From positions 52,638,001-52,702,000 of the forward strand of contig NC_043006.1 of NCBI RefSeq assembly GCF_006345805.1: a DNA stretch of 64,000 bases. The letters run 5' to 3'. Origin of the DNA: Octopus sinensis (taxonomy: Eukaryota). This document shows, in pieces, positions 30,551 to 55,927 of this stretch. A program made the translations under genes and the position numbers. The notes under the pieces were generated by a model, which was given only the letters and a program-made list of their open reading frames with translations, searched no databases and was not told the origin of the DNA. Position 1 is the stretch's first letter. Every line of letters begins with the position of its first letter.

Positions 30551-33439
30551 GAATAATAATAATAATAATAATAATAATAATAATAATAATAATAATAATA
30601 ATATAATAATAATATAATAATAATAATATAATTATTATTATTATTATTATTATTATTATTATTATTATTATTATTATTATCATTATTATTATTATAATCC
30701 TTTCTACTACAGGCGCAAATGAATAATAATCATTTCTACTACTGAATCACACCTGCAAGATCATGCACTGTGTATCTTATATGAGATCACCATGCTACGC
30801 ACATATGATTGAGATGCATAGCCTGGTACATCCTTATCAGTTAGTTAGTCACGATGGATATATCGGGCTTTGTATATTTGTATCCCAATGTCACTTTGAT
30901 GGCATACTGTCTCACTCAACAATAATAATTCTTTCTACTCTAGGCAGAAGTTCTGAAATTTGGGGAAAGGGAGCTACACTATCGCATCCGACTCCAGTGC
31001 TCGACTGGTACTTAATTAATTGACCCCGGAAGGATGAAAAGCTAAGTCGACCTCGGCTGAATTTTAACTCAGACCGTAAACCGACAAAACGCTGCTAAGC
31101 ATTTTGTCCGGTGTGCTAGCGATTCTGCCAGCTCACTGCTTTGATAATATTGATAATAATAATTGATTTCTTACAAGACCTTTTCCATGTGTGTTTACGT
31201 GTGCGATGACACATTCTACAGTAACGGCAGCAATATATAGCCTACTTTATTAAACATTTTTGCCATAAAGGCATAACACAGAGGGAGTGGCTTGCGGGCT
31301 GGACAGAAACATTGATGAGATGAATGATGAAAAAGGATGATATTGATGGGAGAAGACGCCTGCCGATTTTTTGTTTCTCTGAAACATTATTCTTTTTTTT
31401 TTTTTTACACAGTAAGAACAATACGAGGTATTAAACGTCTTACTTTAGTTCCATAGTTCATTCTAAATTGAGGCTCTGAGCCCCTTACAAACAATAAACT
31501 CAAAGCACAAAACAAAACAACAGACCGAAGCATTAAACCTCTTACTTTAATGTTTCTACACAATACGAGGCACTAAACCTCTTAATTTTTTCCGCCCCAC
31601 TGTCACCTGACCAGGCTCAATGCCACACTCAAGCACCTCGATGGTGCTAGGTCGGGAATTTTCAGCAGAAAGCGAAATGTGTCCTCAGGGAAGGAGCTTA
31701 TTACCTCAAACAAGTCTTTTTTTTTCTCACACGACCTCCGCTGCTACCTGTGGAGGCCAACCTGGATTCTTGATACAGGTGCTAATTCCTTCTCATCGAT
31801 CATTTTCATTAAACGGTTTGATCATTCTTTGGGTTTCCCATCCCCCGTGGCACAGAACCACAAATTCCTCCTCCACATAGGGAGAGTCCTCAAATCCCCC
31901 CTTCGGTGGCACAACTCCCACCGAAGGGGTTTCGGGACATGCCAGCAGTGTACTAGCAACCGCCGGCAATGCCTCGTTTTTTCTTTTTTCTTCTTTTCTC
32001 TTTTATATAGCCTACTTGATGCTTGTTATGTAGCTTCAATAAGTAGTGGGGAGGCAAGTCTTTCTATCTCGCTCTGTCTCCTCTCTTCCTTTCTCTTTGT
32101 CGTTCCTTCTCCTTCTCTCTCTCTCTCTCTAAACATACATATATGCATGTTCATGTGAGTGTGTGTGTGGTGGGGGCTTATGAGTGCGTGCGCGTGCTCG
32201 CGCTTGTGTGATACACTATTGGAATAAACGCTGCTGATAGTTTCTTGAAACTGTAATTCGGCCGGTTCATATAACGTGCCTTGTGTCTCCAAGCTATATT
32301 TCAAGTTTAATGTCCCTGATTAGTCCTATTTGAAAATCAGGACGCTAGTACATGAGAAAATACGAGAAAAAAAACAGAAAAAAATTTTTTCCTGTATTTT
32401 TCATGTACCAGCATCCTGATTTTCACACAGGTCTAACCATGTGCTCTAACAGGCACAAGGAACGTTTTATAAATCTATCGAGTTGCCGTGGCATAAAACT
32501 ACTTCCATAACATAAAACTGTTTGCAGCTCTTATTCTAATTATAATGTACATTAAACATCTGTCTGTCACTGGATGAAGCACTTTTTTTTTTGATTTAAT
32601 CTATAGTAGCGGAACAATAAACTTCATACACACACACATACACACACACATACATACATACATACATACATACATACATACATACATACATACATACATA
32701 CATACATATAGTACAGCATGTTTTTTTTTACTTCAAGCATACCACAACGCTAAAACCCGATTAGTTTGAAGTTTAATTATTTTCGTAAGAATTTTCATAA
32801 TTCCATGACAATCGTTTTGCTTACTTTGAAGCACTAAAGCTCCTAACCTCACCATATCATTTTCCATATAAACTATGTTGTTCGTGCGTTTGCATCAACT
32901 TACAGAGATTTGGGAAATATTTCTGTCACAGTTGATTTCATAGTATCATAATATATTTTTTACTTATGTTTTATTTGTTTATCTGTGTATTTAATTTAGG
33001 TTTCTATTTTACTATTTCGAAAGTTATCATTGTTATTGTTCTTATTTTGGGGTAAAAGTATTTATATATATATATATATATATATATATATATATATATA
33101 TATATATATATATATACAGCTGTGTTTATAATTAAAAAAAAGTAGTCACAGAAACCGTTACAAGAATCTATAAACGCAGATTCTTTAGCGTAGCATGTTT
33201 ATTCTGACGTCTGATTTGAAAAGATATTTGACTACATTTCTCTAATATAGAAGAGGATCTTCTTTTAAAAACTACTTTATATTATTTAGTCATTTATTTA
33301 GATTTTTAAAGAATTCTCACCATCATTCATTTTTAAGGAATATGGCTCATTATAAACCAAGACAGAGAAGCCAATTAATTTCTTACAGAAATTTTTTTTC
33401 CAGTTATTTTAACTTTCTTTTATTAAACTTCATCATTTG

Positions 33440-33690
33440 TTAATATTCTGCTCTGGTTCTCATTCTCGTCATAACGAAATGGCGTTTCGTTAGTTTAACT
33501 TGTGTGTTTTTATCTGTTGCTAATTGCAGGAAGTAATTATCAAGTTCTTCATTGGAATTCATTGACTGTCTTTTTCCCAGATAATGCCATACACAACACT
33601 CACAGTGAGCTCGGGCATCAATCGAAGATGGACACATTTTACATTTGCAATTTTCTTCAGTTTTCACGTCTTGCACAAACAAAGAGATTC
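33440..33690 (-). CDS. Last coding exon of a cysteine-rich amidated peptide precursor: (G)ISLFVQDVKT-EENCKCKMCPSSIDARAHCECCVWHYL-GKR-QSMNSNEELDNYFLQL...AEY*
   Basis: Minus-strand acceptor tttcttttttctttttcgttgcag ends at 33691; open frame of 251 nt; six Cys; GKR amidation/cleavage site; stop at 33442-33440; AATAAA at 33423-33418. Confidence 0.8.
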
Positions 33691-33899
33691 CTGCAACGAA
33701 AAAGAAAAAAGAAATAGCAAAGAAAATATCAAGCATTTTACTTTCAATAATCATTTTCCTATAATTAATTCAGGCCTTATATAATATTATTATTATCATT
33801 ACTTGTTTACACTTTTTCGATATCAGTGACTTTTCGTCACTGGAAAAAGGATATATATTTGCAAAGGGAACCCACTTTTCATCGGCAATCGGTGATTGT

Positions 33900-52952: not shown

Positions 52953-52993
52953 GTGAGTTTCAGAGATGATAAAATTAATTTAAATGTTTATTT

Positions 52994-53098
52994 CTACGTT
53001 ACAGACTTATATTAACAAAACTACTGCCTTCACACCTCTTAGTTACTTCAGAAGCTGCCTACATAGATTGCATTTCGCAAGATCTCGCCGATACTTAC
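52994..53098 (-). other. Candidate 105-nt 5'-UTR intron of the peptide gene
   Basis: Strong donor GTG|GTAAGTA at 53098; weaker acceptor ctgtaacgtag ending at 52994. Confidence 0.4.
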
Positions 53099-55927
53099 CA
53101 CTTGGAAATAGAAGGCGTGGTCCACTTATCTCCAAAGTTAACAAGTAATTTCATCCTATTCCGAGAGTTTCCTGTATAGAACACACACACACACACACAC
53201 ACACACACACACAAGCACACACACACACACACACGCACACACACATATACACACACATGTGAACGCGAAGTAGGCATGCTCACAAACATGGACGAGTGTG
53301 TGCGTATATGTAAGAGAGATTGGATGTCTGTGTGTATGTGCGAGCATACGTGCGTGCATGTGTGTATGTGTATCTGTCTGTGTGAGCATGCGTGTATGTG
53401 TTTGTGTGTGTGTGTGTGTGTGTGTGTGTGTGTGTGTTAGTAGTGTTACACAAAGAATTCTGTGACGGGGAGTGAGAATAAGTGCAAAAACAAACGATCC
53501 CTTTGTAATATTGATCATTGATCGATTGGTCATGAAATCGGAAAGTCAAAGTAAAATTTAACGACATCGTGTCTCTCGTCCGTGCGAGTATGCATGTATG
53601 TATGTATGTATGTATGTAAGTATGTATGTATGTATGTATGTATGTATGTATGCATGCATGCGTGTATGTATGGATGGATGGATGTATGTATGTATGTATG
53701 TATGTATGTATGTATGTATGTATGTATGTATGTATGTATGTATGTATGTATGTATGTATGTATGTATGTATGTATGTTTATATGTATGTATCAAGGATTG
53801 AACAGACAGAACACAACAATGAGAAAAAGTTAGACGAAGGTAGAGCAAACGGGAAACTAAACGAGAACTTAACGGACAGAGAATATAGAAAAGACAGGAT
53901 ACACGGAATATTCGCATTTGAGTTTTCCTCGTCAGTCAATGAAACAAAATATCATGTTGGTTTCGCACCATTATCATTGAGACCAATCAGTCTTGGAGGT
54001 GCCAGTGTTGTTATTAAATTACTGGGAAAAAGTTAGCGAATGTATACAGTGATACAGGGTTACAGGGATGTATGTATGTATGTATGTATGTATGTATGTA
54101 TTTGGATGGATGGAGCTCTGTTAAATTCAGTGTTGACACTTCAATTGTTGAATCAACTGAATTACAGGCTCATTGAATTACTTGACACTCTTCTGACATG
54201 TGTACCCTTAAGATAATCCTCTAGTAAAATCAACGTTGCATCGTGTGTAATATAGATGTACTTTTGAACAGAGGCGCAATCAAGCCGGCGTTTTCCAATA
54301 CACTTTTTGTGCGCCTATTTTGCCTCGCAGCGTGGACATCTCGATGTTATAGAAATTGACACGCAGTAGCATCGAATCCAGATCACGTGGTTGCGAAACG
54401 AACTTCACAACCATTATACATATGCGTTTATCTATCTATCTGTCTGTCTGTCTGTCTGTCTGTCTGTCTCTCTCTCTCTCTCTCTCTCTCTCTCTCTCTA
54501 TATATATATATATATATATATATATATATATATATATATATATATATATATATATATATTATATATATATATATATATATGTATATATATATATATATGT
54601 ATATTATATATATATATATAATATATATATATATATTATATATATATATGTATAATATATATATATATGTATATTATATATATATATGTATCTATATATA
54701 TATATATATAGATATATATATATATATATATATATATATATATATATATATATATATATATATATTTAGCCGAAGTAACACAATGACTCAAGGTCCGAAA
54801 GCTGCATGCGTTGGCACTTATATACACACAACACACACAACACACAAAACATATATATATATATATATATATATATACATATATACATACAAATATTTTA
54901 ATAATTATATGCATAATCCTAACAAGGGATTGGCTATAAGCCTCTCCAGGTGCTAGAAAAATAGACGCCAAAAGATACTATTACCACCTCAAAACTCCGA
55001 AAAATAAATCACGGTATGTAGTCGGCCAAAAGGAACATAATGAATTAAACTTTTAGTTAACCGTGTACAAGACCTTGTTTCGAGCTTAAAGTAGAAAATA
55101 TTTATTTACTGCTCTCATCAGCAACAATATTCCATAGTATAAATTAACGTGTATTTACATACACGTATACGAGCAACAACTTCATACAGCAATATATTTA
55201 CACACTCTTAGAAATATACAGTAAAACAGAGTTTTCATCTCTCTCAACCACGTTTAGTATATCAAAACATACTGCGCAGTGAATGCAGTTTTGATCAAGA
55301 AGTAAATCGCTGCTCGTATACGTATGTGTAGATACTCGTCAATTTATACTATGGAAATATATTTTAGAGAAAATAGATATATACCAAATAATACTTAGAA
55401 ATTAACGAGCTAGAAATGCTTTAACACACGTTGTAGTAAAGTCTATAATAGAATATTTAAAATAATAGGCAAGAATAAGTGTATATAACTTTTCTTGTTA
55501 TAAATTATAATCATAATATTTTCAACGTGATATTAAGTTAATTATCAAGTTTAGACTGAAAAACCAGAATAATAATAACTCAATTTATAATTTCACCCCA
55601 CCATAATTTATGACACAGAATAATTGTATAGACAGTTAGGTGCTTTTTGCAATTAGAATATTATCATATAATATCACTTATAGAACTAAAAAATATCTAG
55701 TAAAGCATAAATACAAGCGATTATTCTTATATGTTCCAACAGATTCGAATACTAATATTCCAGTCACTTCTGTATTTCATCATTGGAGACGAACTCCTTT
55801 GAGGCCACTGTATGTTCATAACTCACACGATTCATTAGCATGAATTCCCCGGCTGAATTTGAACTCAGAATGTAAAGACGGACGAAATCCCGCAAAGGAT
55901 TTTTCCTGGCGTACTAAGGGGGTAGTA

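Follow-up and report, generated by a model that had tools for sequence, protein, structure and literature searches.

A probable two-coding-exon prohormone gene of Octopus sinensis predicts a six-cysteine amidated peptide of an apparently unnamed molluscan family

What does the locus LOC118764974 of Octopus sinensis encode, and does its product belong to a peptide family that already has a name? The locus lies in a 64-kb stretch of chromosome CM016868.1 that is called the window here. The question has some weight as the neuropeptide catalogues of cephalopods are thought nearly complete and mostly common to other molluscs, and small peptide genes split over two exons end in databases as "uncharacterized" or with false N-termini. 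We consider it likely that LOC118764974 is a real gene with two coding exons and that its prohormone gives rise to EENCKCKMCPSSIDARAHCECCVWHYL-amide, which would serve as an endogenous signalling peptide. The comparisons described below point to a conserved molluscan peptide family, represented in octopus, cuttlefish and a bivalve, that is apparently unnamed.

The gene is on the minus strand, and the locus was also handled in reversed orientation (L002, window 62952-23440). Its parts, in the direction of transcription, are as follows.

53006..53012, minus strand: TATA-like ATATAAG, 54-60 nucleotides (nt) upstream of the exon-1 ATG
52892..52952, minus strand: coding exon 1, 61 nt from the ATG at 52952, ending TCG before the donor GTGAGT
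33691..52891, minus strand: phase-1 intron of 19,201 nt, donor GTGAGT, acceptor CAG
33691..33725, minus strand: polypyrimidine tract and CAG acceptor, with 29 pyrimidines in the 33-nt tract
33440..33690, minus strand: coding exon 2, 251 nt, covering the last part of the predicted signal peptide, then the peptide itself, Gly-Lys-Arg (GKR), the propeptide and the stop
33578..33658, minus strand: predicted mature peptide EENCKCKMCPSSIDARAHCECCVWHYL, 27 amino acids (aa) with six cysteines (Cys)
33569..33577, minus strand: Gly-Lys-Arg, residues 59-61, a dibasic cleavage site with the glycine amide donor
33443..33568, minus strand: C-terminal propeptide of 42 aa, with little conservation and predicted disorder
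33482..33487, minus strand: second Lys-Arg, residues 89-90 of the precursor, within the C-terminal propeptide
33419..33424, minus strand: AATAAA polyadenylation signal, 15 nt past the stop codon

Exon 1 encodes MKSNVMEKLYKQLYFFCFLF and supplies the first base of the Gly21 codon. This stretch corresponds to the n- and h-regions of the predicted signal peptide and contains a second in-frame ATG (Met6) at 52937. Joined to exon 2 in phase 1, it gives an open frame of 312 nt and a 103-aa protein ending at a TAA stop (33442-33440, minus strand). An earlier note on this DNA had proposed the same two-exon join and product, and both were reproduced exactly from the letters of the window. Its consensus donor and strong polypyrimidine acceptor were likewise found, as GTGAGT and as a tract with 29 of 33 pyrimidines ending in CAG, and the intron that it put at about 19.2 kb and called repeat-filled is indeed rich in microsatellites and dispersed repeats. 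The AATAAA that it placed after the stop is present, at a distance of 15 nt and not the approximately 17 nt given. Within the 30 kb upstream there are six phase-1 donors of the form GTRAGT with an upstream ATG, and the one at 52892 gives the most hydrophobic leader. The ATATAAG at 53006..53012 may be a core promoter. The framework C-x-C-x2-C-x9-C-x-CC followed by GKR occurs a single time among all six reading frames of the window, which holds one copy of the gene and no tandem expansion.

The same note described the gene as hidden, which it is not. An identical 103-aa protein is annotated in the O. sinensis RefSeq set as XP_036362128.1, "uncharacterized protein LOC118764974", from a coding sequence (CDS) that spans 19,513 nt and corresponds to 52952-33440 of the window. 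Another identical protein is annotated in O. vulgaris as CAI9727903.1, "hypothetical predicted protein" (UniRef100_A0AA36B5R6). The gene model is already known; the family and its interpretation appear to be unreported. The motifs of the peptide and the accession numbers were absent from searchable full texts, a search that lay outside subscription-journal catalogues such as the Sepia officinalis neuropeptidome, and in the parts examined of two large lophotrochozoan neuropeptide supplements the motifs were also absent. Across the full texts and those parts of the two supplements, the sole match of the motif searches was to an unrelated insulin A-chain. It is possible that the family has an earlier name in the subscription-journal catalogues beyond this search.

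The precursor has the layout of a prohormone. Its N-terminus consists of a charged n-region and then a hydrophobic LYFFCFLFGISLFV stretch, and AlphaFold places a helix at residues 3-27. By established prohormone biochemistry, the protein would enter the secretory pathway and its signal peptide would be removed after Val-Lys-Thr31. A prohormone convertase would then cut after Lys60-Arg61, a carboxypeptidase would trim both basic residues, and peptidylglycine alpha-amidating monooxygenase would turn Gly59 into a C-terminal amide. The expected product is EENCKCKMCPSSIDARAHCECCVWHYL-NH2 with three predicted disulfides, for which a monoisotopic mass of 3150.252 Da is calculated, or 3132.241 Da with an N-terminal pyroGlu; the corresponding value for the cuttlefish peptide is 3086.167 Da. 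The signal cleavage after VKT suggested in the earlier note is backed by homology, as it falls at a site that aligns with VKA/DKD in Solemya, VRA/DED in the relative of Solemya and VRC/GEG in Sepia (slash at the cleavage site), so that a V-[KR]-[ATC]/acidic pattern is shared with Solemya and Sepia. Cleavage at the Lys-Arg at 89-90 could release two more pieces of the propeptide. The AlphaFold model, with its N-terminal helix, moderately confident peptide region and disordered tail, has a predicted local distance difference test score (pLDDT) of 60, too weak to justify a fold search or disulfide assignment.

Relatives of the protein were found by exhaustive comparison. A word-indexed protein search returned nothing beyond the protein itself, a Pfam search of the protein found no family, a PDB sequence search found no meaningful relative, and a scan of the JGI metagenomes found nothing. 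Exhaustive phmmer, with the single sequence as query against 1.84 billion representatives, gave four relatives (P0002-P0005) at library-wide expectation values (E) of 1.4e-6 to 1e-3. A profile built from these added a protein of the bivalve Solemya velum (P0011, E 2.5e-12), and in the profile search the E-values of the homologues ran from 1e-12 to 1e-42. Such library-wide values make the peptide gene more than a chance reading frame. The family as compared here has six members, the octopus protein included, which have in common a hydrophobic N-terminus, the framework C-x-C-x2/4-C-x9-C-x-CC-x5, an invariant GKR and a divergent tail. The earlier note had read from the octopus sequence alone both the six-cysteine framework C-x-C-x2-C-x9-C-x-CC and the GKR signal for processing and amidation, and had held that losing either in relatives would count against its proposal; both are retained in all six members, with either two or four residues in the second spacing. 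The residues before GKR vary across the family (VWHYL, VWHYY, FYHLQ, IYHLH and VYVVL).

Conservation within this family is uneven along the precursor. Between the octopus and the cuttlefish Sepia esculenta, 19 of 30 positions are identical in the peptide and GKR (63%) as against about 7 of 42 in the tail (~17%), which also carries many gaps. As the peptide and GKR are conserved and the C-terminal part is not, the pattern is that of a prohormone, unlike that of a hypervariable toxin. The cuttlefish orthologue (P0002/P0006), the member nearest to the octopus protein, is also transcribed, being represented by RNA contigs of about 1 kb, drawn from at least 29 sequencing runs, that end soon after AATAAA. 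Three of these runs (SRR19578104, SRR19578114 and SRR20545811) are listed as larval RNA sequencing (RNA-seq) of Sepia esculenta (PMC10466719). The true cuttlefish product has 138 aa, and a 172-aa form arises by reading through a TGA (L003 871-984), so that P0002 carries a false C-terminal extension.

The intron offers a second line of comparison. In Solemya velum a first coding exon of 49 nt is followed by a phase-1 intron of 35.7 kb inside the signal peptide, with the borders CTC/GTAAGT ... TTCCAG/TT. From this intron to the first cysteine there are 12 residues, versus 13 in octopus. In Solemya a stop interrupts the frame ahead of exon 2 and no ATG is present, which makes the distant exon obligatory there. 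The genomic contigs of P0004 and P0005 (L014 and L015, respectively) have a pyrimidine tract with CAG at the same place and in the same phase. In the databases these two proteins begin with the following segments.

L014 1166-1210: false N-terminus of P0004, translated from the intron end upstream of the CAG acceptor
L015 10001-10055: false N-terminus of P0005, translated from the intron end upstream of the CAG acceptor

Both N-termini come from gene calling of the prokaryotic kind, which read through the end of the intron. Applying prokaryotic gene-calling rules to eukaryotic contigs is a general hazard, giving false N-termini as well as C-terminal extensions. The shared position and phase of the intron support the two-exon model in octopus independently of the annotations.

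That the two exons belong together is also indicated by the O. vulgaris assembly L001 (0 Ns), in which both exons are nucleotide-identical to those of O. sinensis and lie on one strand with collinear flanks. The intron is longer there, 23.3 kb vs 19,201 nt in O. sinensis, and the O. sinensis intron is interrupted in the assembly.

44155..44254, no strand: assembly gap of 100 N, inside the intron and outside the coding sequence

Exon 1 is 8.6 kb and exon 2 is 10.5 kb away from the gap, and since the gap lies within the intron no reading frame crosses the Ns. Its region corresponds to L001 18893-23164, which is 4.27 kb in O. vulgaris vs 369 bp plus the gap in O. sinensis. For the 369 bp next to the gap (window 44255-44623) a counterpart was sought in L001 and none was found. 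The difference between 44255-44623 and L001 18893-23164 is either an insertion or deletion between the species or a local misassembly, and this mismatch makes the true gap size, the intron length and the local assembly uncertain.

The intron otherwise contains many microsatellites and dispersed short repeats. A Pfam search with the six open reading frames (ORFs) of at least 150 aa in the window gave 0 matches, and one of these ORFs (47808-48275) is intronic. A dispersed repeat resembling a short interspersed nuclear element (SINE), about 100-240 bp long and with copies 76-90% alike, occurs both within the intron and beyond it. At 53181-53257, some 230 nt ahead of the exon-1 ATG, about 38 units of (AC/TG)n form a microsatellite that O. 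vulgaris also has, in a slightly different form. Copies of the SINE-like repeat include, among others:

43694-43845: SINE-like repeat copy
43917-44030: SINE-like repeat copy
57359-57512: SINE-like repeat copy
57594-57696: SINE-like repeat copy
26341-26493: SINE-like repeat copy

The annotations, the consensus splice sites, the conserved intron and the best hydrophobic leader at 52892 together argue that the annotated splice from 52892 to 33690 is, quite probably, the main form of the transcript. Several observations weigh against this picture. One of the two annotations, that of O. sinensis or that of O. vulgaris, may depend on the other. With the exons of the two species identical and their flanks ~99% identical, a selection test between them is impossible. 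The family is small, with its six members, and P0004 is placed near Solemya solely by its similarity to P0011. By exact-product look-up, the spliced product and its Met6 form are absent from the assembled RNA contigs of the collection, and neither possible N-terminus of the octopus protein aligns significantly with those of Sepia or Solemya (p 0.10-0.84). To these is added the sequence just upstream of exon 2.

33691..33783, minus strand: alternative start region, with the last 64 nt of the intron open in frame and ATGs at 33754 and 33736

A contiguous 104-aa ORF, 33440-33754 on the minus strand, includes all of exon 2, which also contradicts the earlier note's statement that the ORF track could not show this gene. 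A TATA-like TATATAAG motif stands at 33783-33776, 22 nt upstream of the first of the two ATGs (33754), and this motif has only 23 occurrences on both strands of the window. The same peptide might be made from a main or alternative transcript that begins just upstream of exon 2, at a promoter inside the intron, and carries a single-exon ORF (MIIESKMLDIFFAISFFFFVAG...) read from ATG 33754 or 33736. The hydrophobic stretch encoded by the pyrimidine tract would then serve as the signal peptide, and the mature peptide would be unaffected. The product from ATG 33736 starts with MLD, as does the cuttlefish precursor (MLDRCF...), although this match is not significant (p = 0.10). Pyrimidine tracts have no stop codons, so read-through ORFs arise easily, and the same artefact is seen in P0004 and P0005. 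In Solemya and L014 there is no in-frame ATG, suggesting that the upstream exon is ancestral, and both database annotations use the distant exon. Exact-product look-ups in the assemblies collection and the assembled RNA contigs gave no record of the unspliced ORF products or of a short form. We therefore regard a single-exon start as unlikely. For the open end of the intron at 33691-33783 there are two possible readings, an alternative promoter with its own start, or a pyrimidine tract that is open by chance.

If the two-exon precursor is processed as proposed, its most likely role, judging from the sequence, is that of a neuropeptide or peptide hormone, and the receptor of this putative signalling peptide would probably be a G-protein-coupled receptor (GPCR). 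Among venom and host-defence peptides, too, small size, amidation and many disulfides are typical, and expression is known from whole-larva cuttlefish RNA-seq only, which leaves room for a secreted defence peptide, a venom component of the salivary gland or an antimicrobial peptide. Venom and antimicrobial peptides usually vary in their mature region. Here it is the mature region that is conserved while the signal peptide and tail diverge, the reverse of the usual toxin pattern. The homologues in a protobranch bivalve, which is non-venomous, and the one copy in the window without tandem expansion also speak against a venom or defence role, and on these grounds such a role appears distinctly improbable. 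A signalling role is favoured over it because the mature region is conserved, the gene is single-copy in the window and there are relatives in a non-venomous bivalve.

Whether the peptide belongs to a family with a name was judged mainly against the lophotrochozoan HFAamides, represented by 28 distinct cores. The HFAamides are the nearest named family, the likeness to the molluscan peptides as a family being no higher than chance in these comparisons. The first lead to them was a common pattern, CxKMC...CxC..H[FY].GKR; membership was rejected after hhalign, a hidden Markov model (HMM) scored against shuffled sequences, profile search and a comparison of gene structure. The octopus peptide could still be a divergent member, a paralogue or fast-evolving orthologue, that gained a third disulfide. 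The precursors are alike in layout, each with a signal peptide, one Cys-containing peptide, GKR and a long spacer. The KMC and H-[YF] motifs are common to the cephalopod members and the HFAamides, and no canonical HFAamide was found among annotated cephalopod proteins. In hhalign the four cysteines, the His-aromatic pair and GKR were aligned with a P-value of 1.4e-3, but the hhalign probability was only 17%. The HFAamide HMM gave at most 5.4 bits, and against shuffles that preserved Cys and GKR the two cephalopod peptides did only marginally better (p ~0.04-0.05) while the other four of the six members did no better than shuffles (p 0.19-0.58). With an HFAamide profile and a threshold of E <= 10, the new peptide family was not retrieved. 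Canonical HFAamides are moreover uniform, with four Cys and the ending ...GGNLCKCNAVHFAGKR, including an oyster peptide confirmed by mass spectrometry, and in two annelid HFAamide genes no intron interrupts the CDS. A divergent HFAamide is accordingly a doubtful account of the octopus peptide, and of the two options given in the earlier note, a divergent member of a named family or a new peptide, it is the second that agrees with the failure of the comparisons with named families.

Last, a molluscan counterpart of arthropod trissin, a six-Cys GPCR ligand, may be set aside as very improbable, for although trissin is near in size (26-28 aa), has six Cys in three disulfides with a CC doublet close to the C-terminus and in Drosophila ends in YL as the octopus peptide does, YL is not a constant ending in the new family, the trissin framework of four Cys, a long loop and CC differs from C-x-C-x2-C-x9-C-x-CC, and no trissin sequence was retrieved by phmmer or profile search. 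Trissin is also non-amidated and is placed C-terminally in its precursor (PMC12604039), whereas the octopus peptide is predicted to be amidated and to come directly after the signal peptide. The mollusc orthologues of the trissin receptor are orphans (PMC8557429). A bolder reading is a long shot: the octopus peptide would be the first octopus representative of an ancient neuropeptide family of molluscs, perhaps of lophotrochozoans more widely, and the missing ligand of an orphan lophotrochozoan GPCR, such as the trissin-receptor orthologue. Even apart from that reading, the conserved peptide, if real, would add one more family to the molluscan neuropeptide toolkit and offer a candidate ligand for orphan receptors.

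Two other parts of the window, both remote from the gene, also drew notice. At 2980-3117 a match to the Rfam mir-980 model is barely over threshold (49.1 vs 47 bits). The sequence there is a near-perfect hairpin of about 140 nt that matches approximately 20 unrelated microRNA models on both strands, marking it as a generic long inverted repeat and no evidence of mir-980. It is probably a transposon-type palindrome. A 280-aa ORF at 9763-10605 (plus strand), in a G+C-rich, A-skewed stretch at 10-12 kb, has no Pfam match at E <= 0.01. The end of this ORF (...KNYRPISLTSHISKVMERIV...) resembles the start of the reverse transcriptase of a retrotransposon without long terminal repeats, and the ORF is probably a fragment of a long interspersed nuclear element.

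How the octopus peptide stands to known Cys-containing peptides can be summarized from four comparisons. The earlier note had been reminded of CCRFamide and CLCCY-type peptides, a resemblance that does not hold, since these are four-Cys RFamide and 8-Cys knottin-like peptides with different frameworks. CCRFamide, compared in its lophotrochozoan type from Platynereis and Lottia, has the four-Cys framework C-x3-C-x12-C-x4-C and an RFamide end, and CLCCY and CCWamide of Platynereis are 8-Cys knottin-like peptides that lie after a propeptide (precursors from the supplement of Conzelmann et al. 2013, PMC3890597). What all three have in common with the octopus precursor is that they are Cys-containing lophotrochozoan propeptides, of which CCRFamide and CCWamide are amidated. 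Clionin, a Cys-rich secreted peptide of molluscs that occurs in cuttlefish too, has the motif ACLxCxxCF and a spacer before its Cys region, and is without GKR (alignment from the supplement of PMC8398477). The HFAamides, known from Platynereis, nemerteans, phoronids, brachiopods, oyster, Aplysia and Conus, come closer in that a C-x-C pair stands six residues ahead of the amide in both families. Their framework is C-x3-C-x8-11-C-x-C, with four Cys, as opposed to the six of C-x-C-x2/4-C-x9-C-x-CC in the new family, and their nearly invariant ending CNAVHF[AT]-amide contrasts with the [VFI][WY][HV]xx-amide found here.

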